A stretch of 64,000 nucleotides of DNA from the NCBI RefSeq assembly GCF_001194135.2, contig NC_068985.1, positions 60,668,087-60,732,086 of the forward strand, read 5' to 3'. Position 1 is the stretch's first letter; each line of letters opens with the position of its first letter. Under the pieces are notes generated by a model. The model saw only the letters and a program-made list of their open reading frames with translations. It was not told the origin of the DNA and did no database searches. The position numbers and the translations under genes are program-made. This stretch comes from Octopus bimaculoides. Lineage: Eukaryota. Positions 50,201 through 53,200 of this stretch are shown one piece after another.

Positions 50201-53200
50201 AGGTGATTTATATATTTGCCACTGTAAAATTTGCCTTATCTTTGTAGGTTTGACACCTTACCCAACTATGGGACCACAGGAAGTGTGTGAGAAGGTCACC
50301 AGTGGATATCGCATGCCGCAGCCACCACAATGCAGTGCTGAATTGTAAGTAAACATTTAAGAGATATTTCAATGGAGATTATATTTTTAAAGAAGCACAA
50401 TGTTGATTATGGTTAAGGTGCTACACATCTTTAATTCAAATCTCTCTATTACAACCATTGTTTTTTTTTTGTTGTTTAACCCCAGACTAGCCCTGATCCA
50501 ACAGACTTTTGAACGTGTTCCAGCTGTGACCATACCACTTTTTGCTCTTCTATAGTTTATCTAAAACTACATAATCTAATTGATGTATTCACATTTTTAT
50601 GATAGCTGGTTACTTTTTCTAGCAGGTTGACTACTTATGTAGAGCCCCTTATGAAATATATAAAATAGCTATTGTGTAGTACATTGGTCAGAGATATCCC
50701 ACCCATGGCCATCAAGTATTTTTATGGTAGTTTACTAAGAAAGCAGTAATTCTGAATATAATAGTGTGTAGAAAGATCTGTTTAGTTGTGCCTTGCAATT
50801 TTTATTGTGTTAGTGACATGATAGAACCAGTCCAGTCTGTAAAATGGTTGTTGAAAGAAGAATGTCCTACTATATAAACCAAGTAACAAAAACATGTGAT
50901 ATACATTACAATAAGCATAGGAGGTTTTCTCTCTTGTTGTATGTGTGTTTGGTGATGAAGGACTGGACCAAGTGGGGAAATACTGGGTTGTCACAAACCT
51001 GTCCAACCCATGTCAAGATAGGAAACAATGGGAGTTAAACAATAATGAGAATGTTGTGTATATATCTTTTATCTTGTTTCAATAATTTGCTGTGGCCATG
51101 CTGGGGCACCACTTTGAAGGGTTTTAGTTGAACAAAACAACCCCAGGACTTATTTTTTAAGCCTAGTACTTATTCTATCTGTTTCTTGCTGAACCACTAA
51201 GCTGATGTAAACACACCAACATCAGTCATCAAGCAGGAGTAGGAGACAAATACAAAGATACATGCACATAGATAAATACATACATGTGTGTGTGTGTGTA
51301 AAAAGGTTGAATTAGATTCATCCTTTAATTTAGAGGCTTCCAAAAAAGATTTCTAATATATATATATATATATATATATATATATATATATATATATATA
51401 TATATATATATATATATATATAAAATTTATATAAGGGCATTACTATACAATAATGCCTTACGGTGAAAGACCACCCTCCAGGTGGTTTTCTGCTGGTTAG
51501 GCCTTGAGTGTTTGTGTGTGAGAGAGAAAGAGAGGTGGGAAGAGAACATTGCAAACAATGAATGAAATAAACATGAAATGAAAAATTGTATAAATAAAAG
51601 CTCATTATAAACTATCTTGTGCTGAATATTTAAATTTGTGGACTTGAAATATTCAATGATAAAAGGAAGTTCAGAAAACTTCGATTTATAAAAAATCTCA
51701 CTTGCTTTAGTGAATATTTCTTTCAGTAATTTATTGTAGTTGTAATATATCTTCAAGGTTTAGTGTGCTAGAAATAGCCACGACCAAATAGTTATTATTG
51801 TAAAGCTTATAACACTCTGTGGTGTTATGGGCTGTGATGAGCTGTGTGTTGTTGGTGGAGAGGGATGAGGCAAACGGAAGTGAAGCCAGACCGGAAGGGT
51901 CAGACCGGAAGTCGGGCACACGTGGTCAAAGGCTAGCATGTGGGGTCAGTCAGAAAACAGTGAGGTTACGAGAAAGACGTGTTTTGATCAGGAGTGATTG
52001 TGTACTCCGTTGCGGTCAACAAGGTAAGGTCCAACGTTTCATTCTGTCCTTTTGTTTCTTCTTGTCTTTTTCCTCCATCACACCACAAGCTATTTCAGCC
52101 CATAAGAAAAAAAAAAAGAAAAAAAAATCATGAGTGTAGTCCGGATTTCTAGTGATATCATTAAACCGTTTTGCGGCGACACGGACGTGGTCGCATGGCT
52201 AAAAAAGATGAAGCTGGTCGCGAAGCTCCAAGGGATAGGCGACTTGGCAAGCTTTCTACCACTGTACTTGGATGGTCCGGCGTTGGCGCTATTTTTAGAG
52301 ATGGAAGAGAGGGACCAAGTTAGCGCGGAGAAAATAGAAATCCACTTGATGGAGGCCTTCGCAGAAGGAATGTTTGAGGCGTACNNNNNNNNNNNNNNNN
52401 NNNNNNNNNNNNNNNNNNNNNNNNNNNNNNNNNNNNNNNNNNNNNNNNNNNNNNNNNNNNNNNNNNNNNNNNNNNNNNNNNNNNNNNNNNNNNNNNNNNN
52501 NNNNNNNNNNNNNNNNNNNNNNNNNNNNNNNNNNNNNNNNNNNNNNNNNNNNNNNNNNNNNNNNNNNNNNNNNNNNNNNNNNNNNNNNNNNNNNNNNNNN
52601 NNNNNNNNNNNNNNNNNNNNNNNNNNNNNNNNNNNNNNNNNNNNNNNNNNNNNNNNNNNNNNNNNNNNNNNNNNNNNNNNNNNNNNNNNNNNNNNNNNNN
52701 NNNNNNNNNNNNNNNNNNNNNNNNNNNNNNNNNNNNNNNNNNNNNNNNNNNNNNNNNNNNNNNNNNNNNNNNNNNNNNNNNNNNNNNNNNNNNNNNNNNN
52801 NNNNNNNNNNNNNNNNNNNNNNNNNNNNNNNNNNNNNNNNNNNNNNNNNNNNNNNNNNNNNNNNNNNNNNNNNNNNNNNNNNNNNNNNNNNNNNNNNNNN
52901 NNNNNNNNNNNNNNNNNNNNNNNNNNNNNNNNNNNNNNNNNNNNNNNNNNNNNNNNNNNNNNNNNNNNNNNNNNNNNNNNNNNNNNNNNNNNNNNNNNNN
53001 NNNNNNNNNNNNNNNNNNNNNNNNNNNNNNNNNNNNNNNNNNNNNNNNNNNNNNNNNNNNNNNNNNNNNNNNNNNNNNNNNNNNNNNNNNNNNNNNNNNN
53101 NNNNNNNNNNNNNNNNNNNNNNNNNNNNNNNNNNNNNNNNNNNNNNNNNNNNNNNNNNNNNNNNNNNNNNNNNNNNNNNNNNNNNNNNNNNNNNNNNNNN

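Follow-up and report, generated by a model that had tools for sequence, protein, structure and literature searches.

The window analyzed here, 64,000 nucleotides of Octopus bimaculoides DNA (GCF_001194135.2, contig NC_068985.1, positions 60,668,087 to 60,732,086 of the forward strand), contains a retrotransposon with long terminal repeats (LTRs), about 4.2 kb in length and located on the + strand. Its 5′ LTR is directly followed by a 12-nt block, AGCTATTTCAGC, which probably is the primer-binding site (PBS) of the entire clade to which the element belongs and would pair with nucleotides 1-12 of a tRNA, here tRNA-Phe(GAA), and with neither a tRNA 3′ end nor the element's own RNA; based on sequence comparison, we estimate the probability of this reading at about 0.55. 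The initial annotation of the window had proposed tRNA-independent self-priming, with nucleotides 8-26 of the LTR annealing to the PBS. This pairing is real, but probably is not the priming route of the element: the claim finds no support, as the block is kept in relatives whose LTRs have no complement to it. The LTR complement would be neutral or, at most, an accessory anti-PBS, the role of a self-primer being the least likely.

Conservation of the block in related elements

The reverse transcriptase (RT) fragment of the element has 207 homologues, all at most 69% identical to it, with crustaceans, molluscs, a bryozoan, and Trichuris among the named sources; DNA was retrieved for 11 of the homologous proteins and for 80 metagenome loci. 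The clade that comprises the element is widespread, with members in metagenomes and in the genomes of aquatic invertebrates. No copies from the element's own family were found: the best RT matches are 57-69% identical, and the search with gag yielded two matches only, at 60% and 53% identity. Complete relatives are 4.0-4.3 kb long, with LTRs of 72-430 bp and the polypurine tract GATCA(A/G)GGGGGAG followed by TGT. One of them, L025, encodes gag (Retrotrans_gag and CCHC), protease, RT, DUF7047, RNase H, and an integrase with the rve domain; a chromodomain was not found in its integrase open reading frame (ORF), which has rve only, and the integrase from the window has its C-terminus inside an assembly gap. 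The RT matches in PDB are retroviral RTs only, and they are weak (E 3.5e-4).

AGCTAT-NNN-GGC comes with zero spacing after the LTR-terminal ACA in 46 non-redundant relatives; the LTR end was checked against the second LTR in L002, L005, L025, L038, L055, L064, and L209. The information content of the block in these 46 relatives is 2.0 bits at positions 1-5, 1.7 bits at position 6, and ~1.6 bits at positions 10-12, and it drops to 0.1-0.45 bits from position 13 onward. Of the block forms, a few discrete ones prevail, namely, AGCTATCTAGGC (11 relatives), AGCTATTTCGGC (10), AGCTATCGCGGC and AGCTATCACGGC (six each), and AGCTATCCGGGC (two). On the RT tree, the block types are distributed mostly clade-wise, and the TTTC and CTAG types reappear in unrelated branches; such recurrence of a few discrete types fits a small set of trans-acting partners.

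In L084, CGCTACCGAGGC stands in place of the AGCTAT block (positions ~2700-2770), and the complement of this sequence, GCCTCGGTAGCG, resembles the 5′ terminus of a tRNA whose D stem is GCG. The block was not found upstream of gag in L207 (1-155) and L210 (1-116) (60% gag identity; best RT match), which may be transcripts, truncated copies, or elements with a different leader. In L030, L040, L041, and L043 the block occurs again after the second LTR copy; these contigs are tandem LTR-internal-LTR-internal arrays or circularly assembled elements.

Complementarity of the block to tRNA 5′ ends

The block form of ten relatives, AGCTATTTCGGC, is the exact reverse complement of nucleotides 1-12 of tRNA-Phe(GAA), GCCGAAATAGCT. 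This tRNA-Phe 5′ sequence is the same in human (PMC10505166, PMC11706605) and Drosophila (probe, PMC7038984). The block from the window matches it at 11 out of 12 positions and is one CpG-to-CpA transition off, a deviation that fits the dominant mutation type of the element (all 11 differences between its LTRs are transitions, nine of them at CpG). Hence a comparison of the PBS with tRNAs, suggested initially as a check on self-priming, has turned up a matching tRNA fragment, and, as in priming of the copia type, this fragment is the 5′ portion of the tRNA and not its 3′ end (11/12 in the window, 12/12 in ten relatives). The duplex of tRNA-Phe nucleotides 1-12 with the present PBS has an energy of -13.3 kcal/mol, or -19.5 kcal/mol with the CpG restored.

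Other block forms have tRNA counterparts as well. Nucleotides 1-12 of a tRNA-Phe variant, GCCTAGATAGCT, are exactly complementary to one of the commonest forms, and a eukaryote-like tRNA-Phe(GAA) encoded in L086, a contig from IMG/VR, has a 5′ end that matches AGCTATCTAGGC, found in 11 relatives. AGCTATCCGGGC and AGCTAGCCGGGC match GCCCGGATAGCT and GCCCGGCTAGCT, strings that are present in papers on tRNA-Lys and that we take to be Lys-UUU and Lys-CUU, while GCCGTGA-, GCCGCGA-, and GCCGAGA-TAGCT are 5′ ends of real bacterial tRNA-Phe or tRNA-Thr genes. In the scan of the contigs, tRNAs with such 5′ ends were all bacterial, mostly tRNA-Phe, which shows that the block is tRNA-like, not that the tRNAs come from the hosts. 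The region of L086 in question (1634-2510, - strand), labeled as "viral" in IMG/VR, carries a gene cluster for tRNA-Thr, Ser, Phe, and Ser, and its tRNA-Phe is metazoan-like except for the acceptor stem GCCTAGA.

The canonical PBS for the tRNA-Phe 3′ end, TGGTGCCGAAAC, was not found nearby. No tRNA genes were detected in the window or in 60 loci, and no Rfam family matched the window.

Pairing between the LTR and the PBS region

The 5′ LTR is immediately followed by AGCTATTTCAGCCCATAA (52088-52105), with an A-rich linker and the gag start codon at 52130 coming next, so the initial annotation was right in that a TGG-type tRNA PBS does not follow the LTR. The complementarity of LTR nucleotides 8-26 to this region was also confirmed by RNAduplex in the pattern originally described, namely, 10 bp, a T.T mismatch, three pairs, one of them G-U, then a bulged G and 4 bp, and so was its geometry, with T51843, the 3′ end of the LTR segment, placed opposite A52088, the first base after the LTR. 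The paired 10-mer occurs at two places only in the whole window. The energy of the duplex is -22.9 kcal/mol (RNAduplex range for this pairing, -22.1 to -22.9), compared with -13.9 +/- 2.0 kcal/mol for the dinucleotide-shuffled LTR; such strength was reached in none of 3000 shuffles, and the Gumbel fit to the shuffles gives p ~0.003. Thus, the pairing is above chance for a single element, although it was selected by eye post hoc. The start of the LTR contains two tandem 10-nt units, TGTTATGGGC (51823-51832) and TGTGATGAGC (51833-51842), versus a single unit in the homologous LTR of L208, a closer relative.

In order to compare the relatives with the window, we considered 44 of them with at least 100 nt available upstream, and evaluated the best duplex of the PBS region over the upstream 450 nt against shuffles. 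Upstream complementarity to the PBS exceeded the chance level in none of the 44 (z mean +0.35, minimum -1.8; window, -4.0). The reverse complement of an element's own block, with at most one mismatch, was absent from the rest of its locus but for one chance match, and sense tRNA-like 12-mers upstream of the PBS were represented by one match, in L050, at the chance level. A more powerful test, restricted to the initial 40 nt of 11 LTRs whose starts are known, was significant for the window (z -4.3) and marginal for L208 (z -1.9, p 0.04), with the others null; the nearest RT relative, L209, is null as well (z +1.2). Therefore, the LTR complementarity, whose conservation in other copies had been set as a test of self-priming, is absent from the 44 relatives and L209 and is weak in L208.

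The LTR of L208 is 56% identical to that from the window, starts with TGTGGTGTTATGAGCC, and is followed by the leader AGTTATTTCGGCTCAAAAAC, in which TCAAAA corresponds to CCATAA (52100-52105) of the window. One change between L208 and the window is compensatory; a second "compensatory" pair is accounted for by two CpG decays, and two further changes break pairs in L208. The LTR pairing thus appears to be a trait of one small subfamily, and the evidence for its maintenance is suggestive but weak.

Several other interpretations of the region were rejected. The similarity of the LTR segment to the tRNA-iMet PBS of copia, GTTATGGGC, also pointed out in the initial annotation, does not make it a usable PBS, because it is located at the LTR start and not after the LTR, and because its partner, GCCCATAA, is in the tRNA sense. 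The LTR is not a decayed copy of tRNA-Phe, given that the local alignment was matched or surpassed by 354 out of 1000 shuffles, and a hairpin formed by the A-rich linker with the U-rich end of the LTR that would present the PBS is not supported by local folding (z +0.63 vs shuffles).

Predicted transcription start

Both LTRs contain an initiator (Inr) combined with a downstream promoter element (DPE), with the A+1 predicted by these motifs at 51948, that is, at LTR nucleotide 131. Nine such composites, these two included, are present in the 128 kb of both strands. A TCAG downstream of a CACGTG box is common to the window, L001, and L002, and in L002 it is followed by AATAAA ~100 nt further. 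These motifs predict an ordinary U3-R-U5 layout and, given the Inr and DPE at LTR nucleotide 131, nucleotides 8-26 would therefore fall in U3.

AATAAA is seen ~10-20 nt before the LTR-terminal CA, within the last 25 nt of the LTR, in L016, L051, L055, L058, L062, and L069, which implies almost no U5 and a predicted polyadenylation at or near the LTR end. Very short LTRs are present in L005 (9193-9263, ~72 bp) and L003 (9220-9327, ~108 bp), elements otherwise recognizable, and such a length seems hardly sufficient to accommodate a promoter together with R and a poly(A) signal.

Proposed mechanism and alternative explanations

From the observed sequences, their conservation, and the tRNA matches, we infer the priming molecule and the cut site as follows. 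The 5′ end of the tRNA would anneal to the PBS, with nucleotides 1-12 in the paired state, from the 5′ strand of the acceptor stem to that of the D stem. The tRNA would be cut after nucleotide 12, at the end of the duplex, as the primer needs a 3′-OH opposite PBS base 1; either the RNase H of the element might introduce the cut, which would parallel Tf1, or a nuclease of the host, which has been suggested for copia. Synthesis would then proceed from the freed 12-mer into the LTR. If plus-strand strong-stop synthesis reached the tRNA 5′ end after 12 nt and ran off it, this would account for base 12 being exactly where the conservation ceases. The complementary LTR segment, nucleotides 8-26, probably in U3, would be not a primer but a subfamily feature built partly by the 10-nt tandem duplication.

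Several points weigh against this mechanism. In the window, the duplex of the LTR with the PBS (-22.1 kcal/mol) is stronger than that of tRNA-Phe nucleotides 1-12 with the PBS (-13.3 kcal/mol). In L208, the LTR pairing is kept in part, a clean compensatory change (G:C to A:U) being seen once, and some selection on this pairing may have acted. The bacterial and viral tRNAs demonstrate only that such 5′ ends exist, not that the hosts' tRNAs have them. Five or six relatives (L007, L009/L010, L036, L084) show no block in the 220 nt preceding gag. Finally, we know of no precedent for a cut between tRNA nucleotides 12 and 13.

Self-priming similar to that of Tf1 would require transcription to start at approximately LTR nucleotides 1-8, nucleotides 8-26 to fold onto the PBS, and RNase H to cut after T51843, whose 3′ end would then prime. 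In its favor, the duplex does exist, its geometry is suitable, it surpasses 3000 shuffles and, in the window, the duplex of tRNA-Phe with the PBS, and L208 has a weaker counterpart of it in which one change (G:C to A:U) is compensatory. Nevertheless, we consider self-priming very unlikely. The block is conserved in about 50 relatives without the LTR complement, and therefore it is not the LTR that maintains it; U3 would have to be at most 7 nt, with an internal promoter, whereas the Inr and DPE are found at LTR nucleotide 131 in both LTRs; the middle of the duplex (TGATG vs ATTT) is paired worst, despite lying inside the conserved primer block; and the second "compensatory" pair comes down to two CpG decays. 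The same complementarity might be used by a tRNA-primed element in an accessory role, if U3 nucleotides 8-26 of the 3′ LTR paired with the 5′ PBS and circularized the genome, which, by analogy, could aid minus-strand transfer or mask the PBS. There is a precedent in HIV-1, where a tRNA-Lys3-like sequence in U3-R reportedly pairs with the PBS (Piekna-Przybylska et al. 2010, as listed in PMC11241228). Also in favor of this role are the significance of the complementarity, its partial conservation with covariation in L208, and the resemblance of LTR nucleotides 14-26, GCTGTGATGAGCT, to a sense copy of a GCCGTGATAGCT-type tRNA 5′ end. We regard an accessory role as unlikely, as the absence of the complement from 44 relatives and L209 means that the clade does not need it, while the pairing in L208 is marginal (p 0.04) and includes one clean covariation event only.

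The LTR complement may also have no function at all, having arisen from the 10-nt tandem duplication and being shared with L208 by ancestry. A Gumbel p of ~0.003 is not extreme for a feature picked by eye, the tandem units cover 51823-51842, and the complement is missing elsewhere in the clade; at the same time, not a single shuffle out of 3000 is as strong, the register sets the 3′ end of the segment exactly opposite PBS base 1, and one change in L208 is compensatory, and we deem a functionless relic conceivable though not probable. In turn, the block could be something other than a tRNA site, such as a protein-binding or packaging signal, or a site for another small RNA ending with ...AUAGCU-3′, since its partner is identified by inference only and positions 7-9 are variable. 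This is quite unlikely, in view of the zero spacing to the LTR, where a minus-strand primer must sit, the coincidence of the block variants with real tRNA 5′ 12-mers, and the end of the conservation opposite tRNA nucleotide 1. Taking all this into account, we prefer priming by the tRNA 5′ end.

Organization and age of the element

The features of the element are listed in Table 1. Its interior is broken by three gaps (runs of N), and what remains of the ORFs encodes, in this order, the N-terminus of gag, RT (RVT_1), DUF7047, RNase H, and the zinc domain of integrase; a target-site duplication (TSD), CACTC, is present on both sides. With two LTRs of the TG..CA type, the TSD, and the integrase downstream of RT, the element is an LTR retrotransposon with the Ty3/gypsy gene order, a gapped copy of a compact gag-PR-RT-DUF7047-RNase H-IN type (PR, protease; IN, integrase).

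Table 1. Features of the LTR retrotransposon in the window.
Feature	Position	Strand	Comment
TSD CACTC, 5′ copy	51813-51817	+	Same pentamer at 56041-56045
5′ LTR, 270 bp, TGTGGTG...CACCACA	51818-52087	+	255 nt align at 96% with 55786-56040
"Anti-PBS", LTR nucleotides 8-26, TTATGGGCTGTGATGAGCT	51825-51843	+	Complementary to PBS plus 6 nt (RNAduplex)
Inr (TCAGTC) and DPE (AGACG at +28) composite	51946-51980	+	Predicted start A 51948; motif in both LTRs
Splice-donor-like AGGTAAG within LTR	52022-52028	+	Same motif at homologous place in L001, L002, L208
12-nt putative primer-binding block, AGCTATTTCAGC	52088-52099	+	Complement of tRNA-Phe(GAA) nucleotides 1-12 except one CpG-to-CpA change
CCATAA, 6 bases 3′ of block, lengthens pairing with LTR start	52100-52105	+	Not conserved clade-wide
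A-rich linker	52106-52129	+	Between PBS region and gag ATG
gag N-terminus, ATG at 52130, ends at N gap	52130-52384	+	gag 52-60% identical in L001, L002, L004, P0121
RT and DUF7047	53282-54281	+	Pfam RVT_1, DUF7047; 207 homologues
RNase H, broken frame, 10-N gap between duplicated sequence	54330-54700	+	Pfam RVT_3/RNase_H
Integrase N-terminus (H2C2 zinc domain), ends at N gap	54707-55237	+	Pfam Integrase_H2C2
3′ LTR, visible part; first ~15 nt inside N gap 55238-55785	55786-56040	+	96% identity to 5′ LTR
TSD CACTC, 3′ copy	56041-56045	+	Directly 3′ of 3′ LTR

The differences between the LTRs (51833-52087 vs 55786-56040) are transitions in 11 cases out of 11, and nine of them are at CpG; therefore, the copy is old and resides in a methylated genome. 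This suggests CpG methylation of the element in the germline of the host.

Two identical 60-nt copies, 54625-54684 and 54695-54754, flank the 10-N gap in the RNase H region, and most likely represent an unmerged scaffolding overlap rather than biology. AGGTAAG(T) precedes the LTR end by 50-70 nt, and so lies upstream of the PBS, in the window and in L001 (~5707), L002 (~2405/6727), and L208 (~329); this conserved splice-donor-like motif could mark a spliced subgenomic RNA.

Elsewhere, the window is rich in TA/TG/TATACA microsatellites and N gaps and looks like repeat-rich invertebrate DNA. Five ORFs, 2955-3560(-), 7305-7856(+), 25364-25954(+), 27855-28460(-), and 31815-32561(-), resemble, as judged by eye, remains of other transposons, including Tc1/mariner-like and LINE-like ones and a pair of GIY-YIG and RT suggestive of a Penelope-like element. 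A 115-nt direct repeat with 77% identity (45117-45231 and 58951-59065, 13.8 kb apart) brackets the surroundings of the element and probably is another dispersed repeat.

Comparison with known priming systems

Minus-strand synthesis in LTR elements has been described to be primed by the 3′ end of a tRNA, by a half-tRNA, or by the element's own 5′ end. As with the canonical tRNA 3′-end PBS, the presumed primer here is a host tRNA and the PBS is adjacent to the 5′ LTR; unlike it, the site in the window has neither TGG nor complementarity to any tRNA 3′ end. Half-tRNA PBSs, those of copia, Ty5, Osser, and Bianca, occur in Ty1/copia elements and have the anticodon-stem region of tRNA-iMet or tRNA-Ile as their partner, the tRNA fragment being ~39 nt long. 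In copia, Ty5, Osser, and Bianca, the primer is an internally cleaved tRNA 5′ fragment and not the 3′ CCA end (PMC6317226). A tRNA 5′ fragment produced by internal cleavage is what we propose here as well, the differences being the predicted pairing with nucleotides 1-12 of tRNA-Phe or tRNA-Lys, the putative cut in the D stem, and the Ty3/gypsy gene order.

In Tf1, the primer is formed by the first 11 nt of the transcript, and RNase H cuts between nucleotides 11 and 12 (PMC7175516, PMC6317226). The likeness to Tf1/sushi elements (also Tcn1 and TAR) comprises a PBS adjoining the LTR, a short 5′-terminal RNA primer of 11-12 nt that would be generated by a cut at the duplex end, and, in the window, complementarity of the PBS to a segment of the element's own LTR (51825-51843 vs 52088-52105). 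However, the conserved partner in the present clade appears to be a tRNA 5′ end in trans and not the element's own transcript, the self-complementarity is not shared by relatives (z mean +0.35; L209, +1.2; L208, p 0.04), and the chromodomain of chromoviruses was not found in the L025 integrase. In Ty3, the PBS is bipartite (5′-3′), and the PBS or the primer can base-pair with U3, a 3′-terminal segment of the genome, which links the genome ends. Such linking, known for Ty3 and discussed above for U3-R of HIV-1, is a possible role for LTR nucleotides 8-26, with the difference that their complementarity is not conserved in the clade.

With the tRNA fragment of copia and the RNase H cut of Tf1 as precedents, priming by a tRNA 5′ fragment is plausible. 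Searches of the literature for the block strings or for tRNA 5′-end priming yielded only tRNA probes and papers on tRNA-derived fragments, and no such retrotransposon PBS, older subscription papers being outside their scope. A 12-nt tRNA 3′-end search has been used for PBS detection (PMC13524379), and pipelines that look only for complements of tRNA 3′ ends would report "no PBS" in this clade. If our reading is true, the PBS for tRNA nucleotides 1-12, sharply bounded in about 50 divergent elements, constitutes a fourth priming mode. Tentatively, and with somewhat less than even confidence, we suggest that this clade of small LTR retrotransposons from metazoans, as a whole, primes from the first 12 nt of tRNAs (Phe, Lys, and others) by a cut in the D stem, and that the subfamily from the window, with its primer-like complement of the PBS at the LTR start, could be a step from such trans priming toward self-priming similar to that of Tf1. 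Such a mode would link half-tRNA priming and self-priming mechanistically, combining a duplex-end cut of a short 5′ RNA, as in Tf1, with the tRNA origin of this RNA, as in copia.

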